Assembly: GCA_965202585.1 (NCBI GenBank) | Contig: OZ241831.1 | Coordinates: 44,020,001 to 44,084,000 of the forward strand | Length of the DNA: 64,000 nucleotides | DNA from: Thalia democratica | Taxonomy: Eukaryota | Reading direction: 5' to 3' | Shown here: positions 420 through 50,565 of the stretch, in pieces | Layout: every line of letters starts with the position of its first letter | Numbering within the stretch: the stretch's first letter is position 1 | Translations under genes and position numbers: made by a program | Notes under the pieces: generated by a model | Seen by the model: only the letters and a program-made list of their open reading frames with translations | Told to the model about the DNA's origin: nothing | Database searches by the model: none

Positions 420-1376
420 TTAAACGAATACAGCTAGAACAACGGACAAAGCGAGTCTCAGGTAGAAAGTAAATTCCTTTTCAAAGTTTAATGCGACCAC
501 TTCTTGACCAACAATCTTGTAATTAGTTTTCTTTTTATTGGGTGGTTTTGAAGCTGCAACATCAGAAAAACGTTTACCGATCAGCCTTAGTGGTAAAACT
601 TCACCGGTAACACAGCTAGTGTTTTGATCATCAACTTTAGTCGGACTTCCAGTTCCAACTGCTGGTGGTGTTTCCTGAGAAGAATTTTCGTTCGCACAAG
701 AACTCTTGGAACAGTGACCATTTTCAGATGGCTTAGCATACCGTGACATATTCAAAGAGTCCACCTCAACTACTGTCTTGTTCAACTTTGCATAGGAAAT
801 CGGTTTAGTTTGAAAACTAGCAGAGGATTCTGGACTGCTACTAGTCGATGGCTCAGCATCTTCAGAAGGGATATTATCAGCACTAGAAGTTGTTGATTTA
901 ATTTCCTGATGTTTATCTTTGAAAATTTCAAACCATATACTTTCAATTTGTTTTTCTATCTTGGAAATTTCTAACTTGTTCTTTTCAACAGAACCGTGAG
1001 TAAATTTAATAAAAGTTAATGTAGTCTCACCACGAACATATAAAATTTGAAAATCTATATAACTATCTATTTCTTTTTCCAAAATTAACTTTTTATTTCT
1101 TAATAGTTTGTATTTAATCAATCGTCCAGATCGTACTTGTTTACGAGATTTTTTAGTTTCAGCGTTCTCTAACTCATTACTTTCAATTAGATTGTTTCTG
1201 GCAACAGAAGGCAGGGCACTAGTTTTCGGGTCACTGTTCTCCAATGATTTGTTTTCATCATCGGATGCAGAACCTGGGTTGCTGGTGACATTTTGTATAA
1301 CTGGATCGTTTTCAACAGCCACATTGTTTTCACTTTCAAAACTTTCATCAGATTTCAGTTGGTTTTCACCTGACAT
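420..1376 (-). CDS. Orphan membrane-anchored family, copy 1 (subtype A hairpin); stops right after the TM helix
   Basis: 318-aa ORF homologous to the other eight copies. Acceptor TTTTGCAG lies 26 nt before the ATG, and a minus-strand AATAAA sits at 166-171. A TAT>TAA change ends the protein at ...LAVFV, while the family tail sequence continues beyond the stop. Confidence 0.75.
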   Translation of the reverse strand: MSGENQLKSDESFESENNVAVENDPVIQNVTSNPGSASDDENKSLENSDPKTSALPSVARNNLIESNELENAETKKSRKQVRSGRLIKYKLLRNKKLILEKEIDSYIDFQILYVRGETTLTFIKFTHGSVEKNKLEISKIEKQIESIWFEIFKDKHQEIKSTTSSADNIPSEDAEPSTSSSPESSASFQTKPISYAKLNKTVVEVDSLNMSRYAKPSENGHCSKSSCANENSSQETPPAVGTGSPTKVDDQNTSCVTGEVLPLRLIGKRFSDVAASKPPNKKKTNYKIVGQEVVALNFEKEFTFYLRLALSVVLAVFV

Positions 1377-4300
1377 GACGAATTCAACGGGACTAGAAAG
1401 AGCTGCAAAAATATAATGTTATTAATTTAAAAGTGAAGATTTGAAAATGTTAAGTTAAATTTGACATTAAGAATACTTATTTTATTTAATTTAATTATGA
1501 CACCTTTATTTAAATAAAAACCGATTTATAAATTTTTATAACTATAAGAAAATTAATATTATAACTGTTTATTTTCTCAGCTAGTTATATTGTAAAGAAA
1601 TCTATTTTAGCTAAATTCCTATTAAAACTTATAGTGTTCAAGTTTAAGTATTAAGCTGTAGATATATATAAAAAAAATTATAAAGAAAATTAATTGGAAT
1701 TCAAATAAAATAGAAAATATTAATAAATATTTTCTACTTCTTTTAAGTTTAAATAATTTAGGGTTTCTGTGTTTAACCAGTTAATAAATATTTTATATTA
1801 ATGTAACTGATAATTACATTACACTCTATATAAATTTTATAAAAATCAGGGAAGCTAATAAAGCTACTACAATTATTAATCTCTAACAAGTTTTTTTAAA
1901 CATTTTACAAAACAAAATACAAATGTTATAACTACTGTTTACACAACTAATTACAATATAAAATGTCTAGAAATATCTGTATTAAAAAGTTTACAAATAC
2001 TCAAAGTTTTGTTCAGTTAATAATGTATTCTGGTATGAGTATTAACCTGTAAATCTCTGTATAAAACCTTAAACATTAAAACAATTGCATTGAATAATAA
2101 ACTAATGAAAAAAATAATACCACAGCATCACATTTATAACCTTAGCTTGCTTAGATTTCTTAATGATATGTAGATATTAAGTACTTGTACTCAACTAAGT
2201 AATAGTCCTTAACACTTGTGTAAATTATCTAAAATATAAGATTATAAAAGCCAATTAAACTATTACTAATGTCAAACTTTAACAAGTTGTTTACAAAACG
2301 GACTTTTTCGGCATCATTAGTTTTATAATTTTCGAAGCTAAGTCTGTAATATACCGTTATTTACGATCTAATTCAATATAAAAACATTATAAATAAAATC
2401 TTAATAATTAAAAATAAATATTAGTAAGTATGGCTTCATTTTTTCTGATTTGAGCAAAATTAAAAATAAATGTATATACTTCAAAATAAATTTCACACAT
2501 AACATAAAATGTTTTTTAAGTTTTTTAACATTCGTTGACTAAATTTTTCTTTTGATAAATATGTCAATGTTAATGTAATGTAAACTGGTTATTATTTTTT
2601 ATTACTTTTTGTATCTAAACTAACATAATTAATATTGGATCTAATATTTGTTTTTAAACTTTTTATTTAACCGTGAATAAAACTGCATTTAAAAACTTAG
2701 GTTTAGTACGTTTTAGTAATATTTAATAGTTTTAGTAATATGTTGTTGGTATAAAAGTATATTTATTAATTTATAACATATATAACAAAATTATACAGTT
2801 TTTATAGTCTAACTACTAACTTATTAACTGTGTATATATATATTCTTTATTATTACAGCAAATTCTTGCACGTCTTTTAACATGATATTTTTTTCAGCTT
2901 TTATAGCTTCGATTTTTTCTTTCACTAAAAACTAACCACGTCATTTCAACTGTTCAGCGACTACATCAAAACAATAATATTTTACCATTTAATTTAATTT
3001 ATCATTTAATATACATTACTTTACATTGTTTTATCCTAAAATATACTTTAATTATACTAATGTTTAATCCAGTATACTTTTGTTAGTAAAAATTGTAATT
3101 TTAGTTGTTAAATCAAATTCTTTTAACTTGTGTTTCAAACTTAAATATTTACTTACCAATTGCTAATATTCACTAGCACTATCTAAAAATTAAAAAAATC
3201 ACTTTTTTAGTTTCTTAGTTATTTGATCTAAGGCATAATTTATTTTTTCTTTAAGTTTTAACCAAATGTTAACACAAACACTATTTTCAATTTTAATTGA
3301 AATTATCTGATTAAAACTTGTTAGTACTCGTTTAAACTTATAACTTGTTTTGTTATATAACCAACTTTTAGCTAATAATTAATATCTATTTACACTATTT
3401 TCTACCTGAATCAATTGCTTTTTTTCATTTTACCTATTTTTAATCTTGAGATTATTTAGACAGACACTACTGTTTATGAATTTGCAATTGTATTAATAAG
3501 TGAATTAAAAAGTAATTTAAACATTCTAGAACTAATATTTCATACTTACATTTGTTAAAGCTTTTTTTTTGATAGACATACCATCATTTATAAAAATCTT
3601 TATTAAAAAAAAATTAAATAAAACTGTATTTCTAAAAAAAAAAGTACGTGCTACCCCACTTTAAAAAACAAATAAAATATTAAAAAATAGTCAAAAATTC
3701 GTTTTGAAAACTTTTATTACTTGAAAAGTATTTTCCTAAGTTTTACTTTTAAAAGGTTTCTCATCTCATAAAATATGCTGAGCTAGTAGTAAAAATGCTT
3801 CAACCTGGAGTATTGAACTTAATCTAAATAGGTTTTGTTTTTAAGTAAATTTACACTCAAAGCTTTAACAATTGAAAACAATATTAGTTATTTCTAATAC
3901 AGCTCATTTTTAAATTCATAAAAAAGTGTCTCAGGCAGGTTTTGAACCTTTCAGACTGAACCCAATTTGTAACTAGGTCGTCAGTTAACAGTTAATAGTT
4001 AACTGTCAAAAACACTTGTCCATTACAAATAATGTAAATGTTTTAATATTTTGCATTATGTTATATTTTTTCCACGCAATTGAACTTAAAATGCGTACGC
4101 TTTAGATAATAATAGCAATAAACAAACGCTGTTGGATAACTTTATTTATACACGAATTAAAAAAACATTGTAAAAAACTCAGTAGGTTTATAACACAGTC
4201 TAAATATGTTTGAAACCATTGAAAGTTCATTGTAGATTCATTTAATCGTTTATTGATGTACACCTGAAAAATTACTATCTTCAACCTTTTTGAAAAACTA

Positions 4301-4830: not shown

Positions 4831-8197
<3,367 letters not shown>

Positions 8198-14335: not shown

Positions 14336-15364
14336 ATGTCAGGTGAAAAGCAACTGAAATCTGATGAAAGTTTTGAAAGTGAAAACAATGTGGTTGTTGA
14401 AAACGATCCAGTTGTACAAAATGTCACAAGCAACCCAGGTTCTGCATCCGATGATGGAAACAAATCATTGGAGAATAGTGATCCGCAAACTAGTGCCCTG
14501 CCTTCTGTTGCCAGAAACAATCCAATTGAAAGTAATGAGTTAGAGAACGCTGAAACTAAAGAATACGGCGAACCAGTACCAGCTGGACGTTCGTTTGAAT
14601 ACACCTCAGCTGTGTCCGAGTTAGAAAAGAAAATGATAATACTGGAAAATCAGATAGAAACATTTGTGGCTACGAAACCTCATGGTGTGATTGATTCAGT
14701 TCGTATTAGAAATAAAGAAATAAAAAATGCCAAACTAGAAGCTGAATTTAAAATTATTCAGTTGAATCTTGCTGAAATAAAACTTGAACTCAAAAAAACT
14801 TCTAGTACTGATGATTTCCCTTCTAAAGATGCTGAGCCATCGACTTATAGCAATTCGGAGTTCCCTGCTGATCTTCATGCTAAACCGGTTGATCTATCAA
14901 CTATATCTGGTATACACCGTCAACGGAAAGCGGTAATTTTCGAAATGGACAAGAAAATAGCGGAGTTGGACACTTTAAATTCGCCACGACCTGTAAAAAA
15001 CATCCCCTCCGAAAATTGTCACAGCTCCAAGAGTTCTTATGCGAACTCTCCTTTCAAAACACCACCTACAGTTGAAAGTCCGACTAAAGTTCATGATCAA
15101 AACACCAGCTGTGTGACCGGTACACTTTTACTACCAAGGCTGATCGGTGGACGTTTTTCTGATGTTGCAGCTTTAAGACAAGTTAATAAAAACGCAAACT
15201 TCAAAAATGAATTTACTTTCTACCTAAGACTCGCTTTGTTCGTTGTTCTAGTTGTATTAGTTTATACTATTAATAAGGTTTTTTGTAACTTTTTACTAAC
15301 GATTGTGTTTTTAATAGTGTTTGAAATATTAATTTTGGAGGTTTTGATTTACAACAAAAAGTGA
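14336..15364 (+). CDS. Orphan family copy 2 (subtype B); a 1-nt frameshift after the TM gives a second hydrophobic tail
   Basis: 342-aa ORF with an acceptor AG ending at 14309. The tail FCNFLLTIVFLIVFEILILEVLIYNKK is the shifted reading of the family tail. Confidence 0.75.
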   Translation: MSGEKQLKSDESFESENNVVVENDPVVQNVTSNPGSASDDGNKSLENSDPQTSALPSVARNNPIESNELENAETKEYGEPVPAGRSFEYTSAVSELEKKMIILENQIETFVATKPHGVIDSVRIRNKEIKNAKLEAEFKIIQLNLAEIKLELKKTSSTDDFPSKDAEPSTYSNSEFPADLHAKPVDLSTISGIHRQRKAVIFEMDKKIAELDTLNSPRPVKNIPSENCHSSKSSYANSPFKTPPTVESPTKVHDQNTSCVTGTLLLPRLIGGRFSDVAALRQVNKNANFKNEFTFYLRLALFVVLVVLVYTINKVFCNFLLTIVFLIVFEILILEVLIYNKK

Positions 15365-17037: not shown

Positions 17038-18312
17038 ATGTCAGGTGAAAACCAACTGAAATCTGCTGAAAGTTTTGAAAGTGAAAACAATATGGCTGTT
17101 GAAAACGATCCAGTTGTACAAAATGTAATCAGCAACCCAGGTTCTGCATCCGATGATGGAAACAAATCATTTGAGAATAGTGACCCACAAGTTAGTGCCC
17201 TGCCTTCTGATGCCAGAGATAATCCAATTGATAGTAATAAATTACTAATTTCTGAAAATAAAAAATCCGTTGAACTAGAACTAGCTGGACTATTCCTTGA
17301 ATACTCATCAGTTGTGTCCAGATGTGAAAAAAAAAAGAAAATGTTTGAAGAGGAAATAGAAATATCTATCAATGCTGCAAAACCTCCTGGTGAGATTGAT
17401 TTAGATCTTATTAAAAAGAAAAAGATTGAAATAGCAGAAATAGAAGCTAGAATTAAAATGATTCAGTTGAATCTTGCTGAATATATTTTTTCTTTAAAAG
17501 AGAGTTATAAACAAACTACAGTAACAAGTTCCAGTGTTGATGACACCCCTTCTGAAGATGCTGAGCCATCGATTAGTATCAATCTAGAACTCCCTGCTAA
17601 TTTTCCAAACATATCGATTTCATCTTACTCCGATCTACACTATCAACGAGAAGCGGTAAGTGAAGAGTTGCTCAAGAAAATAGCGGAGATAGACACATTA
17701 AAATTGTCACGACTTGTGAAAAATATCCCACCTGAAAATAGTCACTGTTCTAAGAATTCTTATCTGAACGAAAGTTCTTCTCCGGAAACACCACCTGCAG
17801 TTGGAAGCCCGACTAAAATTGATGATCAAAACACCAGCTGTGTTAACCGTTCTAAAGAGAAACATCAACAAACTGAAACAACATCTTCTAGTGTTAAAAA
17901 TATCCCTTCAAAAGATACTGAACTATCGACTATAAGCGATCAAAAATTCTCTGCTGACTATAAAACTAAATTGGCTTATCAATCATCTCCCTCAGATACA
18001 TATCGTCAACAGAAAGCGGTAACTGCAGAGTTGGACAAGATAGTAGTTGAGGTGGACTCTTTGAATAAGCCACATCATGCTTACTCGTCTAAAAATAGTA
18101 ACTGTTCCAAGAGTTCTTGTGTGAACGAAAATTCTTCTCAGGGAACACCATCCGCAGTTGGAAGTCCGACTAAAGTTGATGATCAAAACACCAGCCGTGT
18201 TACCGGTAAAAATTTACCAACGAGACTGATCGGTAAACGTTTTTCTGATGTTGCAGCTTCAAGACCTCCCAAGAAAAACCAAATCTTCGAAAATAAATTT
18301 GCTTCTACCTAA
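17038..18312 (+). CDS. Orphan family copy 3 (subtype B, duplicated S/T/P module); frameshift removes the TM
   Basis: 424-aa ORF ending ...NKFAST*. The TM and tail are still encoded in another frame after about 18303. Confidence 0.7.
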   Translation: MSGENQLKSAESFESENNMAVENDPVVQNVISNPGSASDDGNKSFENSDPQVSALPSDARDNPIDSNKLLISENKKSVELELAGLFLEYSSVVSRCEKKKKMFEEEIEISINAAKPPGEIDLDLIKKKKIEIAEIEARIKMIQLNLAEYIFSLKESYKQTTVTSSSVDDTPSEDAEPSISINLELPANFPNISISSYSDLHYQREAVSEELLKKIAEIDTLKLSRLVKNIPPENSHCSKNSYLNESSSPETPPAVGSPTKIDDQNTSCVNRSKEKHQQTETTSSSVKNIPSKDTELSTISDQKFSADYKTKLAYQSSPSDTYRQQKAVTAELDKIVVEVDSLNKPHHAYSSKNSNCSKSSCVNENSSQGTPSAVGSPTKVDDQNTSRVTGKNLPTRLIGKRFSDVAASRPPKKNQIFENKFAST

Positions 18313-19959
18313 GACTCGCTTTGTCCGATGTTCTAGCTGTATTTGTTTATACTGTTAATAAAGTTTCTCACGGTTTTTGTACTTCCGATTGTATTTGTAA
18401 TAGTGATTATAATTTTGATTTTGAAGGTTTACAACGAAAAGTGATTGAGTGTATCTTTAATTCAAATGCAACTAATTAATTGGATCATTTTTCTTAAGTT
18501 GACTGATATATAGCAGTTTTGTTTAAAAACGTTATTCTGTTTTACCATGTTATGCTATGTTAAAATTTGTCTTATTTATTTTATGTTTAATAGCTAATTC
18601 CTGTCAATTAAATGAATAGAGCAAACCAAGTTTATGCTATTGTACAATAATTGAGTATATAATATAGTAAATACATTTGCGTTCTACAAATTATTTTTAC
18701 CTAAGTAAAAATAACTTAGACACACTTAAATATCAGTACAACTACTAAATGTAGTATTTCAAACATTAATAAAATATAATCCGTAGATTTTCTTTGTTTA
18801 ACTTTCTACGTTAGTTAAATTATAAATTAATATGGGTATAATTATAAATGTTTCTTAGAGAAAAGAACTTGCAAGTTTTTTATGTTTAGCATTTTCTAAA
18901 TATTTTGATTGTTTCATCGGATACATTTTAATAAACAGTATTTTAATTAAACTAAGATTAAAAATATACGATAGTGAATAAACTCCATTAAACTAAAACT
19001 AATTTCAGAATAGTGAAGCTTTAAATAAAGCAACACTCTAAAATTATAAAAAATTTACTTTGTTTACTGGATCAGGTTAATTAAAAAAATAAAAGTTATA
19101 TAGCAGAAAAATAAACGTCAATGAGTTGTGACTTTGGTTCTTCATTTAAATCAACCTTCATTGTAAGTGGAAAAGATTGCCAAGTTTTTATTACTTAAAA
19201 ATCAGTACAATCACTGATTAGATTCAGAGCTGTATGTTTAATGGTATTTGCATTTGTTGAACCGAATTGAAGTTAGTTATAAGGCTTAACTTCAGTGTTC
19301 CTTTTACAAAGTTTAGAAAGTTTCAAACATGCACTACTTATATATGAGTCTATTAGTCGCTATCTGAACTTATCAATACACAATGTTAAAATTACTGAGT
19401 TACTTTTTGTATAGACTATATGCACAATGAAATTAACGATATGTATTTTTGTATTAAAAAAGACTAAGGCAATATTAAAATTTTAGTATTGTATGAAGTT
19501 AAAAAGCTTTTTGTTTACTATTACACTCAAATAAACTTTTTAATTTTTTTTTAACCTCCTCAAAAATATTTTTTTTTTTAACCTCCTCAAAAATAATTTT
19601 TTTTTTAGTTGTTAAAAAATTATCATAATACTAATAAATTTATAAGATAAAGTCTTACAACTAAAAAATTTATCCTGCAAAAAAATTGGAAAATATTTCA
19701 TTCATTTTGTTTTAATAAATCGATAAGTTTTAAAAGATTCGGGTGTTTTTAAAAGTGTACTTCTTTTTATATTCTAAACTTTACTCTGAAATAAATTGAA
19801 ATAAAACTCAACAATAGTTATAAAAAACAACAATAGGTACTTGTTACAAACTTTATTAAAAATTCTTTGAAGCATTGCGACAAAAAAAAAATGCAATTTC
19901 TAAGTAATTATACGAAAACTGAAAGTTTTAAAAAGTAACTATAAGAGAAAGTATTTGTC

Positions 19960-22937: not shown

Positions 22938-22958
22938 CTCTTTGTAGTTGAGTTCGTC

Positions 22959-28466: not shown

Positions 28467-28490
28467 CTTTGTAGTCTAGTTAAATTCGTG

Positions 28491-29882
28491 ATGTTAGATG
28501 AAAAACAATTGAAATCTGCTGAAAGTTTTGAAAGTGAAAACAATGTGGCTGTTGAAAACGATACAGTTGTACAAAATGGCACCAGCAAACTAGGTTCTGC
28601 CTCCGATGATGAAAACAAATCATTTGAGAATAGTGACCCGCAAACTAGTGCCCTGCCTTCTGATGCCGGAGACAATCTGATTGAAGTTAATGAGTTCAAA
28701 CACCTTGATAAAAAAGCCAGTAAACTAGTACTAGCAGAAAGATTGCTTAAATACTCATCAGCTGTGTCCAGACTTTAAAAGAAAAAGTTAATGTTGGAAA
28801 AGCAAATAGAAATATCTATAGTTGATGCAAAACTTCATGGTGTGATTGATTTAGATCTTATTAACAAGAAAAAGTAGAAATTGTTGAAATAGAAGCTGAT
28901 ATTAAAATGATGCAGTTAGATCTTGCTGTAGAAAAATTTTTTCTCAAAGAGAAATATCAACAAACTAAATCAACAACTTCTAGTGTTGATGATATTTCTT
29001 CTGATGATGCTGATCTATTGACTAGTAGTAATTTCCTGCTGGTTTTCCAACTATACCGATTTCATCTTCCTCTGATAGACAGCGTAAACGGGAAGTGATG
29101 ATTTTAGAAATGGAAAAGAAAAGAGATGAGGTGCGCACTTTAGATTTGAAACAGCTTATGAAAAACATTCAATCTGAAATTGGTCATTGTTCCAAGAGTT
29201 CTTGTGTGAACAAAAATTCTTCTCCGGAAACACCACCCACAGTTGGAAGCCATTAAACACCAGCTGTGTTACCTGTTCTAAAGAGAAACATCAACGAACT
29301 GAATCAACATCTTCTAGTGTTGAATATTTCCCTTCAAAAGATGCTGAACTATCCACTAGAAGCAATCCAGAATCCTCTGCTGACTTTCAAACTAAATCGG
29401 CTTATCCGTCATCTTCCTCTGGTACATATCGTCAACAGAAAGCGGTAACTGCTTATTTTGACAAGCCAATAGTTGAGGTAGACTATTTGAATTTTCCATG
29501 GCATGATAACTCGTCTGAAAATGGTCATTGTTCTGAGAGTTCTTATGTGGAAACATCACCTGCAGTTGGTAGCCCGACTAAAATTGATGATCAAAACACC
29601 AGCTGTGTTACTGGTAAAGTTTTACCACCAAGGCTGATTGATGAATGTCTTTCTAATGTTGCAGTTTCAAATCTTTGCATGAAAAAAGAAAAAATCGCAT
29701 TAAGCTTCGAAAAGAAAATTACTTTCTTCCTAAGACTTGCGTTGACCGTTGTTCTAGCTGTATTCCTTTACAATGTTAATAAGGTTTTTCGCAGTTGTTG
29801 TATTTCCGATTGTAATTGTGATTGTGGTTTTGAATTTCGAGGTTTTCAACAAAAAGTGTACCCTTATTTTAAATGCAACTAA
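28491..29882 (+). pseudogene. Orphan family copy 5 (subtype B, duplicated module), disrupted
   Basis: In-frame stop at 28776-28778 and further stops and frameshifts. It is fused directly to the rootletin exon fragment at 28462-28466. Confidence 0.85.
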
Positions 29883-31052: not shown

Positions 31053-31571
31053 ATGTCAGATGAAGATCAACTGAAATCTGCTGAAAGTTTTGAAAGTGAA
31101 AACGATGTGCCTGTTGAAAACGATCCAGTTGTACAAATTGGCACCAGCAACCCAGGTTCTGCATCCAATGATGAAAACAAATCATTTGAGAATAGTGACC
31201 CGCAAACTAGTGCCCTACCTTCTGATGCCGGAGACAATTCAATTAAAAGCAATGAATTACAGATTGATGAAACTAAAAAATCCGGTAAACAAGTACCAGC
31301 TAGAGTCTAGACGATTGCATAAAATCTCACCGGTTGTGTTTAGACTTGAAAGGATAAGGTTCATATTGTTAAAAGAAATAGAAAGATATTTAAAGCTTAA
31401 ACATCTTTATGCTCGTGGTATAATCAATTCTATTAGACTAACTCACGGTTCTGTTGAAAAAAACAAGTTAGGAATTGACACGACAAAAAAAAACAAATTG
31501 AATGGATAAAGTTGGCACATGCTAATCAAAATTCTGATCTCAAAGAGATACATGAACAAACAGGATCCGAA
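31053..31571 (+). pseudogene. Orphan family copy 6 (subtype A), frameshifted and 3'-deleted
   Basis: A 7-nt insertion (GTCTAGA, about 31305) causes a stop at 31308-31310. At about 31571 the sequence jumps from ...GGATCCGAA into the distal 3' flank (AAGGCAATACT...). Confidence 0.85.
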
Positions 31572-32635
31572 AAGGCAATACTAACATTATAGTATTGTAA
31601 GAAGTAAAACAGCTGTTTATTTACTATTACACTTAGATAACCTTTTTAATCTTGTTTAACCGTCTTAGAAATAAAAATTATTTTTTATTTGTTTAAAAAA
31701 TTACAAAACACTAATATATTTATAAGATAAAGTCTTTTAACTAACAGATTTATTCTAAAAAAAAAATTATTTGTATTGTTTTAATAATTCGTGTTTTTTA
31801 AAGTATTCCTCTTTTTGTATTCTAAAGTTTACTCTGAAATTAATCAAAAAAAAAAAAAAAACAGTAGTTATAGAAAACTACAATAGGTACTTGTTACTAT
31901 TTTTATTAAAAATTTGAATCTTTGCGAAAGAAAAAAAACAATTTCTAAGTAATTATACAAAAACTGAAAATTTTGAAAAGTAACTATAAGAGAAAGTACT
32001 TGTCTCCAAAATAAAAGTGAAGTTGGAGAACGATAAACTATTTTATGAAATTTTTTAGTCAAATAGCGCAGAAAGTAAAATTAGGCAAAAAAAAATGATG
32101 ACAGTTAAAACTACCAATTAGAAAATTTACAGAAACTAGGATATATAAAAAAAGCTACTGAAATCGTATATACAAAAATTTATAGTAATTTTAGTTAAAG
32201 AACACAATAAAAAAAAAACGTTAAAAAGCTAAAAAAGGTACAAAAATAAAACAAACACAGTTCTAAAAACGGTTTTAAAAGGTGAAAGTAATGTAGAAAT
32301 TAAAAAAAAAATTATATTAGTTAAGATCAACTCTATCACAGCCTGAAGGCTAGTATCGACAGCTTCGTTAACTAGTGTTTTGTGACGTCGTATTTAAAAT
32401 TTAGTGACGTAATAAATCCTTTAACAGTGACGAAAAATCAGCACAGTAAAAAAACTCCGGCATAAAAAATACAGTCTTCAAAAAAAATGTTTGTTTAATC
32501 GAAACTTAAAACAAGTAAAAGTATTTTAAACAAGCTAATTTCAAAGTATATCTTCCGAAAAGAAAGACATGTAAAACTTTGATTCTAGTAAGCAGCCCTC
32601 GCTTGTACACTGAAGAACTTTTACTTTGTTTTTAT

Positions 32636-33030
32636 TCAGTGTCTCCTTCTCCTAATTTCTTGACTCAACAGGTCTTTCAAGGTGGCTGCCTAAAAAAGAA
32701 AATGTTACTTTAAAAACAGTTTTATTATATCAAAATTACGTAACAGAAAATTAAGTTGTACGTAGCATTTAAGCTTAATAAAATATAAAAAATTTCACAA
32801 ATAATTTTGCAAGGTTAAAAAAACAAAAAACAGCAGCACTTAATTCATTTAGCGAAGTAAACAATAAGAGTAATCAAATAATGTGACGTCACAACTTACT
32901 TGTTCCTCCAGTCCCTTGACGCGCTGCCGGTGAGCTCTCTCGCGCGCCTCCAGTGTTCGTTCCGACTGAATCTGAGCCGTCCTCAGCCTCTCGATCTCCA
33001 GTTCCGACTCCTGCCGGTGCCTGGTGGTGA
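32636..33030 (-). pseudogene. Rootletin 3' fragment: last exon plus part of the penultimate exon
   Basis: Exons 32689-32636 and 33030-32900. Homology ends at CCTGGTGGTGA|AACTT. Confidence 0.9.
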
Positions 33031-34273: not shown

Positions 34274-35341
34274 ATGTCAGGTGAAAACCAACTGAAATCT
34301 GCTGAAAGTTTTGAAAGTGAAAACAATGTGGCTGTTGAAAACGATCCAGTTGTACAAAATGTCACCAGCAACCCAGGTTCTGCATCCGATGATGAAAACA
34401 AATCATTAGAGAATAGTGACCCGCAAACTAGTGCCCTGCCTTCCGATGCCGGAGACAATCCAATTGAAAGTAATAAATTAAAGATTGCTAATAAAACTGG
34501 TAAACCAGTATCAGCTAGACGATTGATTAAATTCTTACCATTTCTGTCCAGATTAGAAAAGACAAAGTTAATGTTGGAAAAAGAAATAGAAAGATATATA
34601 AAGTTCGAAAAACGTTATGCTCCTGGTGAGACTAGATCCAATTTTATTAGACTGACTCACGGTTCTGTTGAAAAGAACAAGTTAGAAATAGCCAGGATAG
34701 AAAACAAAATTGAAAGCAAATGGTTGGACATTGGTATAAAAATTCCTGACCTCCAAGAGGTACATCAGCAAACTGAATCCAAAGTTGAAAATATCCATAC
34801 TGATGACAGTAATCTCATGACTACTAGCAATCCGAAATCCTCTGCTGGCTTTCCTACTAAACCGAACAACTATGCTACTTACCGTCAACAGAAAGCAGTA
34901 ACTGCTGAGGTGGAGAATAATGTCTCAGAGGTAGACACTTTAAATTTACCACAACATAATAACCCACCTGAAAATGGTCACTGTTCTAAGATTTCTAACA
35001 TGAACAAAACTTCTTCTCATACACCTCTCGAAGTGGCAAGCCCGACTAAAGTTGATGATCAAAACACCAGCTGTGTTACCGGTGAAGTTTTATCACCAAG
35101 GCTGATCGGTGAACGTTTTTCTAATGTTGCAGCTTCAAAACAACCAAGGAAAAACCAAAACTTCGAAAATAAAATTACTTTCCACCTAAGACTCGCTTTG
35201 TCCGTTGTTCTATCTGTATTCGTTTACATTGTAAATAAGGTTTTTCACGGTTTTTGTGATTCCGATTGGTTTTGTAATAGTGTTTGTAATTTTGATTTTG
35301 GAAGTTTTCAACAAAAAGTGATTGGGTGCATCCTTAAATAA
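34274..35341 (+). CDS. Orphan family copy 7 (subtype A), intact, 355 aa
   Basis: Full ORF with acceptor, TM, Cys tail and a downstream AATAAA at about 35479. Confidence 0.8.
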   Translation: MSGENQLKSAESFESENNVAVENDPVVQNVTSNPGSASDDENKSLENSDPQTSALPSDAGDNPIESNKLKIANKTGKPVSARRLIKFLPFLSRLEKTKLMLEKEIERYIKFEKRYAPGETRSNFIRLTHGSVEKNKLEIARIENKIESKWLDIGIKIPDLQEVHQQTESKVENIHTDDSNLMTTSNPKSSAGFPTKPNNYATYRQQKAVTAEVENNVSEVDTLNLPQHNNPPENGHCSKISNMNKTSSHTPLEVASPTKVDDQNTSCVTGEVLSPRLIGERFSNVAASKQPRKNQNFENKITFHLRLALSVVLSVFVYIVNKVFHGFCDSDWFCNSVCNFDFGSFQQKVIGCILK

Positions 35342-39514: not shown

Positions 39515-39547
39515 TCAGTGTCTCCTTCTCCTAATTTCTTGACTCAG
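39515..39547 (-). pseudogene. Rootletin 3' fragment: partial last exon and 3' region
   Basis: TCAGTGTCTCCTTCTCCTAATTTCTTGACTCAG, then an abrupt switch to the upstream flank of copy 8. Confidence 0.85.
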
Positions 39548-40880: not shown

Positions 40881-41918
40881 ATGTCAGGTGAAAAACAACT
40901 GAAATCTGCTGAAAGTTTTGGAAGTGAAAATAATCTGTCTGTTGAAAACGATCCAGTTGTACAAAATGTCACCAGCAACCCAGGTTCTGCATCCAATGAT
41001 GAAAACAAATCATTTGAGAATAGTGACCCGCAAACTAGTGCCCTACCTTCTGATGCCGGAGACAATCCAATTGATAGTAATGAATTACAGATTGATGAAA
41101 CTAAAACATCCGGTGAACTAAAACTAGCTACTCTGTTGCAAAAATTATCACCATCTGTGTCCGAATTGAAAAAGAGAAAGTCAATGTTGGAAAAGGATAT
41201 AGAGCAATTTATGGATGCTGCAAAACCTTATGATGAGTTTGATTTAATTTGTATTAGAATAAAAATAATTAGAATTGCCGAAATAGAAGCTCAACTTAAA
41301 ATGATTCAGTTGGATCTTGCTGAAGAAAAACTTGAACTCAAAAAAACTTCTAGTGCTGATAATATCTTTTCTAAAGATGCTGAGCCATCGACTAGTACCA
41401 ATTTTGAATTCCCTGCTGATATTCATGCTAAATCGGGAGATCTATCAACTATATCTGGTATATGCCTTCTACGGCAAGCGGTAGTTGACGAGTTGGACAA
41501 AAAAATAGCTGAGGTGTACACTTTAGATTTGACAAGACTTGTGCAAAACATCCCACCTGAAAATGGTCACTATGTGAACGAAAATTCTACTCCTGAAACA
41601 ACACCCGCAGTTGGAAGCCCGACTGAAGTTGATGATAAAAACACCAACCGTGTTATCGGTAAATTTTTACCACTGAGGCTGATCGATGAACGTCTTTCTA
41701 ATGTTGCAGCTTCAAATGCTCACATGAAAAAAAGAAATTTCGAAAAGGAATTTACTTTCTACCTGAGACTCGCTTTGTCCGTTGTTTTAGCTGTATTCGT
41801 TTATACTGTTAATAAGGTTTTTCGCAGTTTTGGTACTTCCGATTGTATTTGTAATAGTGATTGTAATTTTGATTTTGGAGGTTTTCAACAAAAAGTGATT
41901 GAGTGCATCCTTAAATGA
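40881..41918 (+). CDS. Orphan family copy 8 (subtype B), intact, 345 aa from the ATG at 40881
   Basis: Full ORF with acceptor, TM and Cys tail ending VIECILK. Confidence 0.8.
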   Translation: MSGEKQLKSAESFGSENNLSVENDPVVQNVTSNPGSASNDENKSFENSDPQTSALPSDAGDNPIDSNELQIDETKTSGELKLATLLQKLSPSVSELKKRKSMLEKDIEQFMDAAKPYDEFDLICIRIKIIRIAEIEAQLKMIQLDLAEEKLELKKTSSADNIFSKDAEPSTSTNFEFPADIHAKSGDLSTISGICLLRQAVVDELDKKIAEVYTLDLTRLVQNIPPENGHYVNENSTPETTPAVGSPTEVDDKNTNRVIGKFLPLRLIDERLSNVAASNAHMKKRNFEKEFTFYLRLALSVVLAVFVYTVNKVFRSFGTSDCICNSDCNFDFGGFQQKVIECILK

Positions 41919-44014
41919 AATGCAACTAATTTTTTGAATAATTATTCTAAGTTATACGATTTACAGCGATTTTGTTGAAAAAACTTTATTCTGTTTTACC
42001 ACGTTGTGCTATGTTAAAATCATTTTGTTTGTTTTGTGTTTAATAGCTAATTTCTGTCAATAAAATGAATAGTATAAAAAAAGTATATGCTATTGTACTA
42101 TAATTGAGTATATAGTATAGTAAATAAATCTGCGTTCTACAAATTCTAAAAAATTCTAAATAAATAAGGCTTACTTAAATATCAGTAAAACCACTAAATG
42201 TTGTATGCCAAATATAAATAAAATATGCGATAATTTTCTTTGTTTAACTTTCTACTTTAATTAAATTATAAATTTGTTTGTCTATAATTATAAATGGTTA
42301 ATAATGAAAAGAACATGCAGGATTTATTCTTGTTTAGTTTTTTCTAAATATTTTGATTGTTTCATCAGATACATTTAAATAAGCAGCTTTTTTATTTAAC
42401 TAAGATTAAAAATTTACGATAGTGACTAAACTCCATTAATCTTAAACTAATTTCAGAATAGTGAAGCTTTAAATTAAGCAATACTCTAAATTTATAAAAA
42501 CTTTACTTTATTTACTGGATCAAGTTAATTAAAAAAAATAAAAGATATATAATAGTAGAAAAATAAACGTCAATGAGTTGTGACTTTGGTTCTTTATATA
42601 CACCAACCTTCATTGTAAGTGGGAAGGAATGCCATATTTTTATTACAAAACATCAGTAAAATCACTGATTAGACTCAGAGCTGTATATTTAATGGTATTT
42701 ACAATTATTGAAACGAATTGAAGGTAAGTTATTAAGTTTAACTTCAGTGTACCTTATGCACAGTTTAGAAAGTTTCAAATATGCATTACTTATATATGAG
42801 TCGAATAGTTGTGCTTTCTATCTAAATTTATTAATACACAATGTTTAAATTACTGAGTTATTTTTTTATAGACTATGTGTACAATGAAATTAATGATATG
42901 TATTTTGGTATTAAAAAGGACCAAGGCAATACTAAAACTTTAGTATTGTATGAAGTTAAACAGCTGCTTGTTTACTATTACACTCAAATAATCTTTTTAA
43001 TTTTTTTTAAACTTCTTAGAAACAAAAAAAGTTTTTTAGTTGTAAATAAAGTATCAAAATTTTAATACATTTATAATATAAAGTTTTATAACTAATTAAT
43101 TTATCCTAAAAAAAAAAACTGAAAAATATTTTATTCATTTTGTTTTAATAAATCGATAAGTTTCAAAAGATTAGGGTGTTTTTAAAAGTGTAATTCTTTT
43201 TATATTCAAAACTTTACACTGAAATTAATTAAAAAATACAAAGTAGCTACAAAAAATCTCAATAGGTATTTAATACAAACTTTATTAAAAATTTGAATCT
43301 TTGCGACAAAAAAAAAACAACTTCTAAGTAATTTTTACGAACACTGAAAGTTTTAAAAGTAACTATAAGAGAAAATACTTGTCTGCAATTAGAGGACGGA
43401 AAACAATTTCTTAAAAATTTTCAGTCAAATAGCGCAGAAATTAAAATTAGGCAAAAAAAAAAGTGATGACAGCTAAAACTACCAATTAGAAAGTTTACAG
43501 AAACTAGGATAGATAAAAAAAGCTACTGAAATCGTATATACAAAAATTTAAAGTATTTCTTATTTAAAATAGATAATATAAAACAAAAAAAACGTTAAAA
43601 AGCTTAAAAAAGTACAAAAATAAAATAAACACAGTGCTAAAAACGGTTTGAAAAGGTGAAAGTAATGTAAAAAGTAAAAAAAAAAACTTATTTTAGTTGA
43701 GATCAACTTTATCACAGCCTGAAAGCTAGTATCGACAGCTTCGTTAACTAGTGTTTCATGACGTCATATTTGAAATGTAGTGACGTAATAAATCCTTTAA
43801 CAGTGACGTAAAATCAGCACAGTAATAAAAAAACTCACAGCGTAAAAATACAGTCTTTAGTAAAAATATACGTTTAATCAAAACTCAAAACAAGTAAAAG
43901 TATTCAAAACAAGCTAATTTCAAAGTAGGTCTTTCGACAAGCAAGACATGTAAGATTTTGATTCTAGTAAGCAGCCCTCGCTTGTACAATGAAGAACTTT
44001 TACTTTGTTTTTAT

Positions 44015-45592
44015 TCAGTGTCTCCTTCTCCTAATTTCTTGACTCAGCTGGTCCTTCAAGGTGGCAGCCTAAAAAAAACAGCAGTTGTTTAAAAACAGTT
44101 TTTTTATATCAAAATTACGTAATAGCAAAACTAAGTTATACATAATATTTAAGTTATTAAAAAAAAACGAACTTTTTTATTGAGATATTTGTAAAGCTAT
44201 AAAAAAATAAACAGCTGCACGAAGTAAATATTTAAAGTAATCAACTAATGTGACGTCACAACTTACTTGTTCCTCCAGTCCCTTGACGCGCTGCCGATGA
44301 GCTCTCTCGCGCGCCTCCAGTGTTCGTTCCGACTGAATCTGAGCCGTCCTCAGCCTCTCGATCTCCATTTCCGACTCCTGCCGGTGCCTGGTGGTGATTT
44401 CGATCAGCCTCTTGGCGTTCGCCTGCTCCGTGTCCGACAGCTGCTGCTGCATCGCCTGTTAGAAAGTTTGTTGGTGTTCTATGGTTGAAAATAAATTTTA
44501 TCTAGCTTTATTTTATTCTTTGTTTTTAGACTTATTTTAATATTTGAAGTATCAAAATGTTAATTTGCATATATTTTAAAGCATTAAAAAAAAAAGTTTA
44601 TTAAAAATTACACATTAGCTGAAACTACTTAACTGATTTTTTAAATAACAATTCTCAATTAAATATTTTTTACTTGTATAGTCTTCCTAGCATCTTCTAG
44701 TTCGCATTCAAGGTCTCTGCAAGATCTATCCAAAACTCCTCTGTCCTCAACAAGTCTCATCGACTCCTCTTCAGTCTTCAAACGTTCTCTCTTAACCTTT
44801 TAGTGTTGTTTACGATCAATTGTTTGATAAAAAATAACTTGAAGCTAATTATAAAGTATAAGTACTACAATAGGAAAGACCCTTTATCAGATTAATTAGG
44901 TTTTCGAGCATTAAAGTTTATCAAAAAGTAGTTAAAATGATCTAATTAGTTTTATGATAAAATGCGTTACATCATGATCTCATACTAAAACAGATTTGTA
45001 GTTTTGTTAGAAGGGATCTTTATTAAACCTATTTTTTATATGTAGTAATATATAGCACAAGTAAATGAAAAAAACCACTTACTTGACCAACTTTAAGTAA
45101 ATAACTTAATTGTAAAATATGTTTGGAGTGTATAATTTTAAATTCTCAAACAAAATGTTGTGAAATAATAAACAAACTTTATCAAGTGTCTTCTGCAGCG
45201 CGTTCTTGTCCTTCTCCAGTCTGACTGCTCCCCTCTGAGTTTCTCTCTTCTCGCTGTCCAGCTGTGCGATCGCCCTCTGAAGTCCCGTGATCCTCTCCTG
45301 CAAGATCCTCTTCTCCTCCTGCAATTTCTGGATCCTCACTAATGCCGACTGTTCCGCTTCCTGGCGCTTGTCGCAAACCTTCAAGTTTTGTAGTTGTTTT
45401 CCACAACAAATTTAAGATAATTTACAAAATTAAACAAGTCAAAAAAAATCTATGAAAGTAAATCAAACGCCGTATTTAGCCGTACTTGTTTTCAAATTAA
45501 AAAAATTAAATCATACAAAAGCTGTACAAAAACAATTTAAAAATATTCCAACCTGCTGCAGATCCTTCAGTTGAGTTTCCACATCGGTCCTC
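44015..45592 (-). pseudogene. Rootletin 3' duplicate: four complete terminal exons with intact splice sites plus a partial fifth exon (could be a usable alternative 3' end)
   Basis: Exons 45378-45178, 44796-44674, 44455-44267 and 44068-44015 are open and in phase. A partial exon spans 45553-45592. Confidence 0.85.
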
Positions 45593-45597
45593 CACAG

Positions 45598-45697
45598 TTG
45601 TGGATCATCGTTGGGTGAGAAGAGATACATCAAGATGTCACGTGATATGCAGAACAGCTGCGGAATCGCCACTCAAGCATCATACCCACTTGTTTAA
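45598..45697 (+). pseudogene. Isolated, inverted duplicate of the cathepsin L last exon
   Basis: Matches the reverse complement of 4831-4930, with the acceptor CACAG and the TAA retained. WGSSWGEKG has become CGSSLGEKR. The cathepsin 3' flank follows. Confidence 0.92.
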
Positions 45698-46247
45698 ATC
45701 ATTGTGATGTCGTATTAACTCGGTTGGTTTTTTAGTTAATTGGTTAAATGTAAAAACTACAGTTAAGTTCATTGTAAAACTAATCAAATTTGTTTTGGAT
45801 TATTTAACTATAATTCTAATAAATATCCTATCTCAGTTGCCTTTTTAAATAAAGTGTTAAAAACTTTTTGACAATTTTTTTAAGTAGTTAAATGTTATTT
45901 TTTTTTAATTATTTAAAGAGAGCTTATATAAAAGTCTACTATGCTTAGTTAGTATTTAATACCTCTTATAAACAGTTAAAATTTTAAACATCTTGTTTAG
46001 TTTTATTAAGCAAGCTTTTTTGTGATCCTTTTGTTTTTAATAAATGATAGTTTTGTGTTAAAATATAATTATTTAGTTTTATTTATTATAGTTATAAGAT
46101 ACAAAGTTTTATTAGAAGTTTGTTAACGTATTTTAAAAAACAAAATTACTGAAAAACTTGTTTTAATAACTCTTATTTCATTGACTAGTTAAAATATTTT
46201 TTTAAAAAGCTAGAAGATAGTAATTTTTCAGGTGTATATGTATAAGC

Positions 46248-46750
46248 CAGGGGTCGGCACGGTGTACACTGGTGCAAACTAGTGTTCAAAAATTTTTTTT
46301 AGGGTGCACGATACTTTTGGGGTGCATGAAACTTATTTTGGGGTACATGGCTTTTTTTTTGCGCAAAAACTAAATTTAAGTTTTTTTTTTTTTTTAATAC
46401 ATTTAAGACATATTCAACCTTGATATCTTATTGACCATTTTGTTGCTAATAAAACGACCATTTTTGTACTCTCTTAGTTCTATTTTGTTACATAATGTAA
46501 AACTTCTTCTACCCTTTGCCACCAAAAGTAAAACTGAAGTAAGCAAATCTCATACATTCTTTAAAACAAAATAAAACGGTTAGTATTGTATTAATGTTTA
46601 ATTTTATTGACTCTTATTGTATAAAAGCGTTTTGCTACATTAAAAATCACTATACTAATCAGCTTATTTAACTAATATTTGAACAAAAAATAGTTTGGCC
46701 TAAAATATTCAATAATATTTAACTCATAATAAAATTAAAGTAAAAAAAGG
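46248..46750 (+). mobile_element. Truncated hAT-like insertion
   Basis: Begins CAGGGGTCGGCAC, similar to hAT/Charlie termini. About 500 bp are absent from the homologous 20130-20200 region. No right TIR was found. Confidence 0.45.
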
Positions 46751-49491
46751 TCAGATTTTACAATTTAATTCGTGTGTAAAAAAATTATCCAATAGCGTTT
46801 ATTTACTTATATTATTATTATTATAATTGTTGAGCTTTTCAAAATGCATTTCACCAAAATCTATACTATTTAGAAAAACGTAATCATTTTGAGTTCAGTT
46901 GCGTGGAAAAAACGTAATTAAAAGTATTAAAAACATTACATAACTCATAATGGCCAAGTGTTTTAGAAGAATAATTATAAAACAAATTGGGTTCAGTCTG
47001 AAATGTTCATAATCTGCCGATGACGTATTTTATGAATTCAGAAATGAGCTGTAATAGAAATAACAAGTATTGTTTTCTATTGTTGAAACTTTAAATATAA
47101 ATTTACTTAAAAACAAAATCTATAAACATTAAGTTTAACATTCAAGGTTTAATCATTTTGACTACTAGTTCAGCATATATTATGATATGACAAAATTTTA
47201 AAAGTAAACTAAGGGATATACCTGTCAATAAATAAAAATTTCTAATACATGTTTTTGACAATTTTTTTCGTCTTTTGTTTGAATTTTAGAGTGGGGTAGC
47301 ACATACTCTACTTGTTTAGAACTACAGTTTTATTTAAACTTGTTTTAATAATGACTTTTATAAATTATGAAAGTGTCTATTTAAGTGTTAAAGCATTTGT
47401 TTGTTATAGCTTTAACAAATTTAAATATTAAAAATGTTTTTTTAACTTTAAATTTTAATAATCATTACAATTTCATGTCATAAACAGTAGTGTCTGGCTA
47501 AACAAAATCAAGAGTATAAATAAGTAAAATGAAAAAAATAAACTATTGATTCATGTAGATAATAGTGTAAATATATGTTAATTGTTGGCTAAAAATTGGA
47601 TATAAAACAAAACAATTTATAAGTTTAAACGAGTACTAAAAAGTTTTGATAAAGTAATGTCAATTAAAATTGCAGCTAGTGTTAGTGTTAACATTTGGTT
47701 AAAACTTTATGACAAAATAAATTACAGGCTAGAGAAAAGTTTCAACAAATAAAAAACTAAACAACTAAGTTTTTTATATCTTTTGATATTGCTAGTGAAT
47801 ATTAACAACTGGTAAATAAATATTTAAGTTTGAAACACAAGTTAAAAAGAACTTGATTTAACCATTTAAATTACAAATTTTACCATTAAAAATCTACTAG
47901 ATTAAACGTTAGTACAGTTAAAGTATATTTGAGGATAAAAAAATATAAAGTATTATATTGTAAATGATAAATTATATTGACGTGGTTAGTTTTTAGTGAA
48001 AAAAAAATCGAAGCTTTGAGAGCTAAAAAAACCCAATAAAAGGCGTGCTAGAATCTGCTTTAATAAAAAAGTAGAGTTATAAAGTTTAGTTCGAATATAA
48101 AAATTGTATAACTTGGTTGTAATACTTATAATATAATAAATATTCATTTATACCAACAACAACAGTTAGATATAACTATAACGTACTAAACCTAAGTTTT
48201 TAAATGCAGTACTCAGGGTTAAATTGAAAGTTTATAAAAAAGTATTAGATTACATGTTAAATGTCGGTTAGTTTAAATACAAAAATTGTATTTAAATAAT
48301 GATCAGTTTACATTACACTAACATTAACATATTTACCAAAAAATAACTTTAATCAACGAGAGTCGGAAAATTTTAAAAGTTTTTATGTTATGTGTGAAAT
48401 TAAAAAAAATATATATACATTTTTAGTATAATATTTTCCTTGAAGAAATGAAGTCATACTTACTAACGTTTATATTAAAATTTAGCTTTTATTTTAAATG
48501 TTGTATAGTTAATACTTACTGATTTAGATCGTAAGTTTTAAAACTAAAGTTTCTGAAAAAGTCAATTTTGTGAACAACTTATTAGAGTTTCATGTTAATA
48601 GTAGTTTCATGGCTTTTATAATTTTGTGTCATAGATAATTTACACAAACATTAAGCAATTAACTTGTTGAGTGTAAGTACGTAATATCTACATAGCATTA
48701 AGAAAACTAATCAAGCAAAGGGTATAAATACTACGTTATAATAGCATGTTTTTTCATTAGTTTTTTTCTATGAAATTTGATTTTATATTAATACTTTAGA
48801 CATAAATTTACAGGATAATACTCCTACCCGAGTACTTTTTTTTCAATTAAACAAAACTTTTATTATATTTAAAGTTTTATTTAACAATATTTCTTTACAT
48901 TTTTTAGTGTAATTAGTTGTGAAAATAAGATTTATAACATTTGTTTTTGTTTTGTTAAAGATTAAATATTGTTAGTTTAATAGTAGTAGTTTTATCTTCC
49001 TTGGTTTTTATAAAATTAGTTTAGTGTTTAATGTAATTAGCAGTTACATAAACACTAAGTTTTTTTTTACTTGTTTAATTAAGAAACTAAATAGTTAACA
49101 CACTAAAATAAATCTAGCAAGGGTTTCTAAATGTTGTTTTAGTTGAATGATTGATAACTATTTTTACTTGAAATGAACTTTCATGTTAATTTGTTAGATA
49201 CTAATCTGCAGCTTAATACTTATACTTCTATAATTTTTTTTCAATTGAAATACATTATTTTATTTCTAATAGATATTTTGCAAAAAGATATTTCTTTACA
49301 AATTAGATAGTTCAGAAAAAAGTAGTTCTGCTTTTAATTTCCTTAATGTTGTAAAATGTAGGCTTTTACTTAGTTATAGGTCTCATAAACAAAATAATGA
49401 CTTTATTTTATGTTAACTTTTCGTTTTCAATTTTTCACTTTTTAAAAATTATAACATGTTATTTTTGCAGCTCTTTGTAGTTGAAGTCGTC

Positions 49492-50565
49492 ATGTCAGGT
49501 GAAGATCAACTGAAATCTGCTGAAAGTTTTGAAAGTGAAAACAATGTGGCTGTTGAAAACGATCCAGTTGTACAAAATGTCACCAGCAACCCAGGTTCTG
49601 CATCCGATAATGAAAACAAATCATTTGATAATAGTGATCCGCAAACTAGTGCCCTGTCTTCTGATGCCGGAGACAATCCAATTGAAAGTAATGAATTACA
49701 GATTGCTGTAAAATCCGGTAGACTAGTACTAGCTCGACGATTGCCTAAAATATCATCAGTTGTGTTTAGTCTTGAAAGGATAAAGTTAACATTGTTGGAG
49801 GAAATAAAAAGATATAGGGAGATTGAAAATATTTATGCTCATGGTGAGAATATATCAAATTTTATTAGACTGACTTTCGGTTCTGTTGAAAAGAATCAGC
49901 TAGAAATTGACACGATAGAAAAACAAATTAAAAGGATAAAGTTGACACATGCTAATCAAAATTCTGATCTAAAAGAGATACATCAACAAACAGGACCCGA
50001 AGATATAGTTGCTGATAATATCAATACTGAAGATCGTGATCCATCGACTATTAGCAATCCAGATTTCTCTGCTGACTTACAAACTAAACCAAACAACTCT
50101 GCTAAAAATCGTCAACATAAAGCGGTGATGGCTGAGGTGCAGAATAATGTAACAGAGGTGGACACTTTAAATTTACCACAGCATAATAACTCATCTGAAA
50201 ATGGTCACTGTACCAACAGTTCTTATGTGAATTCTCCTCTCAAAACACCACCCGCAGTTGGTAGCCCGACTGAAGTTGATGATCAAAACACCAGCTGTGT
50301 TACCGGTAAACTTTTACCATTAAGGCTGATCGGTGAACGTTTTTCTGATGTTGCAGCTTCAAGACCTCCCAAGAAAAATAAAAACTTCGAAAAACAAATT
50401 ACTTTCTACCTAAGACTCGCTTTGTCCGTTGTTCTAGCTGTATTCGTTTATACTGTAAATAAGGTATTTCGCAGTTTTAGTACTTCTGATTGTATTTGTA
50501 ATATTGATTGTAATTTTGATTTTGAAGGTTTTCAACAAAAAGTGATTGAGTGCATCCTTAAATAA
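49492..50565 (+). CDS. Orphan family copy 9 (subtype A), intact, 357 aa; convergent with rootletin
   Basis: Acceptor AG ends at 49470. TM plus Cys tail are present, with AATAAA at 50707-50712. Confidence 0.8.
   Translation: MSGEDQLKSAESFESENNVAVENDPVVQNVTSNPGSASDNENKSFDNSDPQTSALSSDAGDNPIESNELQIAVKSGRLVLARRLPKISSVVFSLERIKLTLLEEIKRYREIENIYAHGENISNFIRLTFGSVEKNQLEIDTIEKQIKRIKLTHANQNSDLKEIHQQTGPEDIVADNINTEDRDPSTISNPDFSADLQTKPNNSAKNRQHKAVMAEVQNNVTEVDTLNLPQHNNSSENGHCTNSSYVNSPLKTPPAVGSPTEVDDQNTSCVTGKLLPLRLIGERFSDVAASRPPKKNKNFEKQITFYLRLALSVVLAVFVYTVNKVFRSFSTSDCICNIDCNFDFEGFQQKVIECILK

Follow-up and report, generated by a model that had tools for sequence, protein, structure and literature searches.

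Comparison with described systems

Tail-anchored membrane proteins (clients of GET/TRC40 or EMC, among them SNAREs, cytochrome b5 and Sec61-beta) have no signal peptide and are held in the membrane by a single C-terminal transmembrane (TM) helix that follows a large N-terminal part. The same layout is found in a family of genes that forms a tandem array in a 64,000-nucleotide stretch of the Thalia democratica genome (assembly GCA_965202585.1, contig OZ241831.1, forward-strand positions 44,020,001 to 44,084,000, hereafter the window, or C7:44020001-44084000), where the large N-terminal part is predicted to be cytosolic. The array proteins have no sequence or fold relationship to these clients, however, and their tail beyond the helix, at 35-46 residues with four cysteines, exceeds the usual length of fewer than 30. 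Nor is there a SNARE motif beside the TM helix, or a match to a SNARE or synaptobrevin family in Pfam; an AlphaFold2 (AF2) model has about 130 largely disordered residues between the helices of the soluble part and the TM helix.

KASH proteins (nesprins, KASH5, LRMP/Jaw1) combine a variable cytosolic coiled coil with a TM helix at the C-terminus, beyond which lies a luminal cysteine-bearing peptide of about 30-35 residues, and the predicted layout of the array proteins resembles theirs. Unlike them, the array proteins have neither a PF10541 match nor a PPPX ending, and distant paralogues do not retain the tail. The TMCC family also couples a coiled coil to a C-terminal anchor, but without sequence similarity to the array; a TMCC3 entry in our fold search was discarded, as its TM-score of 0.14 on a low-confidence model is meaningless.

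As a locus, the array has counterparts of a different kind. The SpTransformer (Sp185/333) genes are likewise small and tandem, with constant ends, a mosaic middle, gain and loss of modules, and recombination. Their products, though, are secreted immune effectors with a signal peptide, encoded in two exons, whereas the array proteins have none and are predicted to be membrane-anchored. The wtf drivers share with the array its multiple copies, fast change, gene conversion, and adjoining intact and dead members. Unlike the array genes, they encode multi-pass proteins from two overlapping transcripts, lie dispersed near long terminal repeats, and form a poison-antidote pair, of which the array gives no sign. 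An earlier, sequence-only reading of the window had set the locus beside SpTransformer, wtf and allorecognition systems. This analogy draws on array dynamics alone, and a variable domain predicted to face the cytosol is unlike that of classical extracellular recognition.

A tandem array of protein-coding genes

We consider it probable that the array consists of lineage-restricted genes for tail-anchored proteins of about 355 amino acids, lying in tandem beside the 3' end of rootletin, with an open frame under selection and little constraint on sequence. Among the open reading frames (ORFs) in a six-frame list of the window, a group about 320-420 codons long is clearly related, and a search of the 801.8-Mb assembly with copy 9 recovered all nine loci that the sequence-only reading had proposed; the ORF list, the assembly search and a protein alignment agree on their presence (Table 1). 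The count of nine proved too low. A further intact copy, up0, lies on the minus strand at C7:44011320-44012426, 8 kb before the window, and two more occupy the 34-kb unplaced contig C919, the first of which, u919, is intact. Weak matches were also obtained on C6 and C4. Within the window, intact genes do stand beside pseudogenes, as had been described: copies 4, 7, 8 and 9 are intact and, with up0 and u919, make up the intact set, and copies 1, 2, 3, 5 and 6 are damaged. Copies 1, 2 and 3 each keep more than 300 codons open, with lesions confined to the membrane anchor or its immediate vicinity; these copies have either died recently or are anchor-less forms that are tolerated. Pairwise divergence between copies is 7-35%.

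Three sequencing runs from two independent studies, under two organism labels, contain 42-63% of the 31-mers. Contigs that match perfectly span intergenic stretches too, which identifies all three runs as DNA. The array is thus neither a chance nor an assembly effect, and its sequence is reproducible across two studies.

That the ORFs are real protein-coding genes, kept open by selection, follows from two comparisons. Indels between the coding sequences (CDSs) of intact copies measure 3, 9, 6, 12 and 15 nt and are in frame, and pairings with copy 8 each show two odd indels (5 and 22, or 5 and 16) whose total is again a multiple of three. In the flanks of these pairs (1 kb upstream, 800 nt downstream) indels are far more numerous, and most measure only 1-2 nt. 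In a neutral simulation that placed random AT-biased substitutions on copy 9, the share of trials without a stop was 14% at 4% divergence, 2.4% at 8%, 0.7% at 12% and 0.15% at 15%; for the middle segment, the terminal branches leading to copies 7 and 8, up0 and u919 measure 0.13-0.16 substitutions per site. Indel phase and simulation together argue against neutral decay as the origin of the six open frames, which run to 345-380 codons.

Table 1. Coordinates of the array copies and of the parts of copy 9, in window positions
Feature	Position	Strand	Description
Copy 1	312-1376	minus	Full-length homologue, ORF 420-1376, homology on to about 312; TAA inside TM helix
Copy 2	14336-15364	plus	342-codon ORF, type-B middle; tail frameshifted just past TM helix
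Copy 3	17038-18458	plus	ORF 17038-18312; Ser/Thr/Pro-rich (S/T/P) module duplicated in tandem; frameshift directly before TM helix
Copy 3, remnant of TM helix and tail	to 18458	plus	
Copy 4	22959-24035	plus	Intact, 358 aa, TAG stop
Copy 5	28491-29882	plus	Pseudogene; middle part with many stops
Copy 5, second S/T/P module, TM helix and tail	ORF 29187-29882	plus	Still open
Copy 6	31053-31580	plus	Pseudogene; frameshifted beyond about codon 80, ending near codon 175
Copy 7	34274-35341	plus	Intact, 355 aa, TAA stop
Copy 8	40881-41918	plus	Intact, 345 aa, type-B middle, TGA stop
Copy 9	49492-50565	plus	Intact, 357 aa; reference copy
Copy 9, splice acceptor and 20-nt 5' untranslated region (UTR)	49462-49491	plus	Acceptor ttatttttgcag/; module common to all copies and dispersed paralogues
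Copy 9, N-block	49492-49689	plus	Residues 1-66; acidic, disordered; dS about 0.09
Copy 9, helical hairpin	49744-49983	plus	Residues 85-164; sole confidently folded soluble part
Copy 9, TM helix	50398-50457	plus	Residues 303-322 of 357
Copy 9, C-terminal tail	50458-50562	plus	35 residues, four Cys (CxCxxxC...C)
Copy 9, polyadenylation signal AATAAA	50707-50712	plus	About 145 nt past stop

Gene structure

A splice acceptor, TTTTTGCAG/CTCTTTGTAG with the slash at the junction, lies 22-27 nt upstream of the ATG in each copy aligned or matched, and a DNA search with the acceptor/5'UTR module found it in 12 of 12 copies, in line with the earlier description. In-frame ATGs further upstream in copies 4, 8 and 9 lie 5' of the acceptor and are unconserved, so the start at MSGE is the true one. 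A TATA-like element, which reads GTTATAAAA in most copies, precedes the acceptor by about 130 nt and is a candidate promoter only. At the other end, eight copies were compared: seven have an aligned AATAAA and copy 3 has AATTAAA. The 3'UTR is conserved as well, so that the polyadenylation signal is indeed kept in most copies. Each gene would then comprise one coding exon, with the acceptor most likely taking a spliced leader or closing a short 5' intron. A search with the leader sequence of one candidate host genus gave no match, a result without weight in either direction. The stop codon has changed within a shared position, being TAA in copies 9 (50563-50565) and 7 (35339-35341), TAG in copy 4 (24033-24035) and TGA in copy 8 (41916-41918); copies 1 and 3 have TCA at the same codon position, and u919 and up0, which also lack that stop, run on for 11 extra residues that include an NAT sequon.

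Protein architecture and predicted topology

In the protein alignment, a near-constant block of 66 residues (N-block) leads into a helical stretch, an S/T/P-rich stretch, a hydrophobic helix and a cysteine-bearing tail, which bears out the variable helical segment and S/T/P module that had been placed between constant ends. The hairpin exists as two old sequence types, type A in copies 9, 4, 7 and 1 and u919, and type B in copies 8, 2 and 3 and up0. An AF2 model built on an alignment of nine paralogues has a low overall confidence (mean pLDDT, the predicted local distance difference test, 50.6), with helices at residues 85-164 at a pLDDT of about 90, a long TM helix at 297-331, and disorder over 1-84, 162-206 and 219-296.

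Every intact copy has a single hydrophobic segment (Kyte-Doolittle hydropathy over 19 residues, KD19, about 1.9, and the only one of at least 1.6), followed by 35-36 residues, or by 46 in up0 and u919. The first 48 residues reach a maximum KD19 of no more than 0.03 in every copy; the N-terminus is acidic and hydrophilic, in keeping with the reported absence of a signal peptide. The C-terminal helix and its CxCxxxC...C tail were also read correctly, but the tail measures 35 residues and not about 37. With one TM helix near the C-terminus and no hydrophobic segment near the N-terminus, the family has the features of tail-anchored membrane proteins, the class to which its sequence assigns it. The ribosome exit tunnel covers about 30-40 residues, and a TM helix 35 residues from the end would still be in the tunnel at termination, so insertion would have to be post-translational.

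On this topology, the acidic disordered N-block, the helical hairpin and the S/T/P-rich linker would all lie in the cytosol, with the N-block as the constant and the hairpin as the variable module, and the four-cysteine tail would point to the lumen or the outside. Net charge is -13 over the N-terminal 296 residues and -1 in the tail; the latter would favor an endoplasmic reticulum-derived membrane over mitochondria or peroxisomes. The tail ends in ECILK, in CILNSNATNLLDKYS in u919 and in CVLKSNATNFLDDFS in up0. We weighed the terminal CILK as a possible CaaX prenylation site and dismissed it: a final lysine is unfavorable, two intact copies extend 11 residues further, and the cytosolic C-terminus that prenylation entails clashes with a single-span topology. 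Inspection by eye found no convincing FFAT, LIR or endocytic motif in the N-block. As a best guess at a cellular role, these proteins may serve as cytosol-facing adaptors or tethers on an endomembrane.

Selection and evolution of the array

Pairwise dN/dS ratios (omega) were estimated by the Nei-Gojobori method (NG86) for the six intact copies, with a codon bootstrap (Table 2). Selection keeps the frame open, and the amino-acid sequence is almost unconstrained, with omega about 1. "Rapidly diversifying", if taken to mean positive selection, is not upheld by these values, since neither the whole CDS nor the hairpin departs significantly from unity. An apparent excess of replacements between copies 4 and 9 (60 against 20 changes, over 841 and 230 sites) turns out to be a site-count effect, with omega 0.83.

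Table 2. Pairwise dN/dS among the six intact copies, by region
Region	omega	95% confidence interval	Mean dS
Whole CDS	0.94	0.78-1.15	0.25
N-block	0.63	0.30-1.60	0.09
Hairpin region	1.17	0.82-1.70	0.37
S/T/P linker	0.97	0.75-1.26	0.30
TM plus tail	0.59	0.32-1.13	0.19

The near-invariance of the N-block is real at the nucleotide level, with a mean identity of 93% among copies, but it does not stand as a sign of protein constraint, because its dS is so far below that of the hairpin. Low dS in the N-block and the tail, beyond what protein constraint would explain, indicates gene conversion at both ends, and for the uniformity of the N-block within the array it points to conversion, rather than constraint on the protein, as the main cause.

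Shuffling of modules is evident from the nearest paralogue, which shifts along the unit. Copy 8, for example, goes with copy 2 and up0 in the hairpin, with copies 9 and 4 in the TM helix and tail (93%), with copy 4 in the 3'UTR (94%), and with copy 7 further downstream (90%). In approximately unbiased (AU) tests on maximum-likelihood trees, the middle segment rejects the tree of the 3' segment (p = 2e-56), and the reverse test gives p = 0.001. Identity between copies 4 and 9 declines from 98% far upstream through 96, 94, 91 and 90% over the CDS to 85% in the 3'UTR, a steady gradient that fits recombination history and weakens the case for any special acceleration of the CDS.

Self-comparison shows that the repeated unit spans several kilobases, flanks included. 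The GC-rich terminal exon of rootletin, whose genuine copy lies at about 52915-53111, recurs at 28270-28466, 32879-33030 and 44246-44442; these scattered copies are 95% identical, and that at 28270-28466 adjoins the 5'UTR of copy 5. Their presence in the array implies growth by tandem duplication of a block made up of the rootletin 3' end and one family gene. A larger block, 44000-45600, matches 52649-54290 at 86%. The array has changed by segmental duplication, unequal exchange, duplication of modules, and gene conversion that homogenises both ends.

The unplaced contig offers a further view of this process. C919:1-34045 and C7:44.010-44.029 Mb, which run in opposite orientations, share three collinear blocks of 91-94% identity, and about 10 kb of C919 has no collinear match. 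The second of its copies is a 93% match to up0 and has one extra S/T/P module, and the first, u919, stands in place of copy 1, to which its CDS is only about 81-83% identical. C919 is probably a divergent second haplotype, which would mean large allelic differences in the array; it is possible that it is instead a paralogous duplicate.

Relatives within and beyond the genome

No known relative of the family was found in Pfam, the PDB, the Atlas or a word-indexed set of 5.8 billion proteins, and contig scans of viral and metagenome contigs yielded none either; the earlier description of the family as unrecognised and lineage-restricted agrees with these searches. In Pfam, nothing rose above the level of sub-threshold noise (MIC19, Mu Gam, YbfN), and a whole-model fold search of the AlphaFold cluster library gave TM-scores of at most 0.25, which are meaningless at the mean pLDDT of this model. 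A phmmer search of 1.84 billion proteins gave three matches, of which two were rejected: P0001, made up of protocadherin cytoplasmic repeats and matched by the TM helix alone, and P0002, a helicase with coiled repeats. The one real relative is P0003, an ORF of 108 residues carried by two short metagenome contigs, which shares both the acceptor-then-ATG layout and the N-block motif. Its DNA is 76% identical to the 5' module of a paralogue on C6, and includes a dispersed repeat 80-88% identical to copies in the Thalia genome. The shared module and repeat indicate that P0003 comes from a related species.

Profile and DNA searches also uncovered dispersed paralogues on C6, C9, C5 and C4, all with the same acceptor, 5'UTR (CAG/CTCNTTGTAG...GTCGNCATGTCA) and N-terminal motif. 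Such sharing of an acceptor, 5'UTR and N-block module on four other chromosomes is a new observation that goes beyond the earlier reading. On C6, the first coding exon of one paralogue (C6a, C6:72911908-72912984) is followed by an intron, an in-frame TAG precedes its homologous TM helix, and its tail has 7 residues; a second (C6b, minus strand), 12 kb away, is short and frameshifted. The paralogue on C9 (C9:47243998-47245062, minus strand) is intact, with 354 codons from the conserved ATG. It has EKQLKPD four times ahead of the N-block, over which hhalign gives 82% probability; its body is unalignable with the C7 copies, and it ends in a TM helix and a 5-residue tail. In the C5 paralogue (C5:24849127 onward) a 12-residue unit, EKQLK[SP]DKNIES (36 nt), has multiplied to about 29 tandem copies, with frameshifts, and a far longer version of this unit array, about 3.4 kb, occupies C613:29267-32747. 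One frameshift near the start falls in an A-run and could be an assembly error; frameshifts also occur later on. On C4, a relic (C4:20193421-20193790, minus strand) has its ATG mutated to ATT; it keeps the genomic acceptor, which rules against a retrocopy and identifies it as a DNA duplicate. Weak relics further lie at C4:20236229 and C4:19588893.

Since the dispersed relatives combine the 5' module with a C-terminal anchor, the architecture is older than the C7 array, which is one expanded branch of a wider family.

Alternative explanations

A number of points weigh against reading the array as tail-anchored protein genes under selection for an open frame. Five of the nine window copies are damaged, an overall omega about 1 is also expected of decaying pseudogenes, and the other frames could be held open by conversion from one working master gene. 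Searches for transcripts among sequencing runs gave the same three runs, all DNA, and no RNA run with any copy; an exact look-up of the family proteins in a collection of 15 billion proteins was empty. Topology, target membrane and insertion route have all been deduced from the sequence, and a tail of 35-46 residues is long in comparison with classical GET clients. Damage, an overall omega of 0.94 and the lack of any RNA or annotation match in the runs and the 15-billion collection would equally suit non-functional ORFs, that is, a recent segmental duplication in neutral decay whose open frames either survive as relics or are maintained by gene conversion. We regard this as distinctly unlikely: six frames of 345-380 codons persist at 7-30% divergence, where neutral survival would be at most about 2% per lineage; indels preserve the frame in the CDS and not in the flanks; omega is about 0.6 in the N-block and in the TM helix with tail; and an intact, very divergent paralogue of the same architecture exists on C9. 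A transposable-element or viral gene, carried or derived, would account for multiple copies, an intronless coding region and the want of cellular homologues. It is scarcely credible given copies limited to one tandem array and a few single-locus relatives, a host-type splice acceptor and polyadenylation signal on each, no transposable-element or viral domain and no relative on viral contigs, and a C4 relic that, with its acceptor, is a DNA duplicate.

Other alternatives accept the genes and differ on what they do. In a recognition or conflict system, as the earlier reading proposed, the hairpin and linker would be under diversifying selection, for instance against intracellular symbionts, pathogens or selfish elements, or else in self/non-self or gamete interactions. 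In its favor, most pairs have a hairpin omega of 1.0-2.0; conservation of the middle part (68%) does not exceed that of intergenic DNA (65-69%); birth and death, module duplication and recombination are all present; and the probable haplotig C919, about 93% identical in the flanks, falls to about 81-83% in the CDS that matches copy 1. Against this, the confidence interval of hairpin omega includes 1, with P(dN<=dS) = 0.19, the gradient between copies 4 and 9 fits recombination tracts rather than CDS-specific selection, the predicted topology turns the variable part toward the cytosol, and omega near 1 is common among disordered orphan proteins. On balance such a system appears unlikely. A bolder form of the idea, and a long shot, is a new kind of intracellular variable-receptor system, in which the N-block would act as a constant docking peptide and, with the anchor, present a hypervariable cytosolic hairpin to intracellular symbionts, pathogens or selfish elements. 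Shuffling and conversion within the array would go on diversifying the hairpin, and the 5' module would be a portable cassette that has seeded new genes on several chromosomes. Finally, the variable cytosolic helical domain, C-terminal TM helix and cysteine-bearing tail of about 35 residues would suit a divergent KASH-like family of the nuclear envelope, made up of cytosolic coiled-coil adaptors with a luminal tail that binds a SUN protein. This is very improbable, as Pfam gives no KASH (PF10541) match even at E-values up to 1, the tail ends in CILK or the 11-residue extension and not in PPPX, and the tails of C6a and the C9 paralogue are only 5-7 residues long.

Implications and neighboring features

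As a lineage-restricted set of tail-anchored protein genes, the array represents a protein family unknown to current databases and apparently missed by gene predictions, a gap that the present annotation fills. It also provides a clean evolutionary example, in which selection keeps the frame, amino acids drift near-neutrally and conversion holds the two ends constant. The occurrence of one 5' module before very different protein bodies on several chromosomes suggests that its reuse makes new tail-anchored proteins. Should diversifying selection prove true, the family would be a rare case of variability directed toward the cytosol.

Two further features of the window lie outside the family. Between copies 4 and 5, the minus strand carries a Q/N/S-rich ORF of 170 codons (24716-25228) with no Pfam match. 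At 46240-46650 there is a very high-copy dispersed repeat, for which each of the three DNA runs gives a summed k-mer depth of 3e4 to 9e4, compared with about 200-500 for the adjoining bins.

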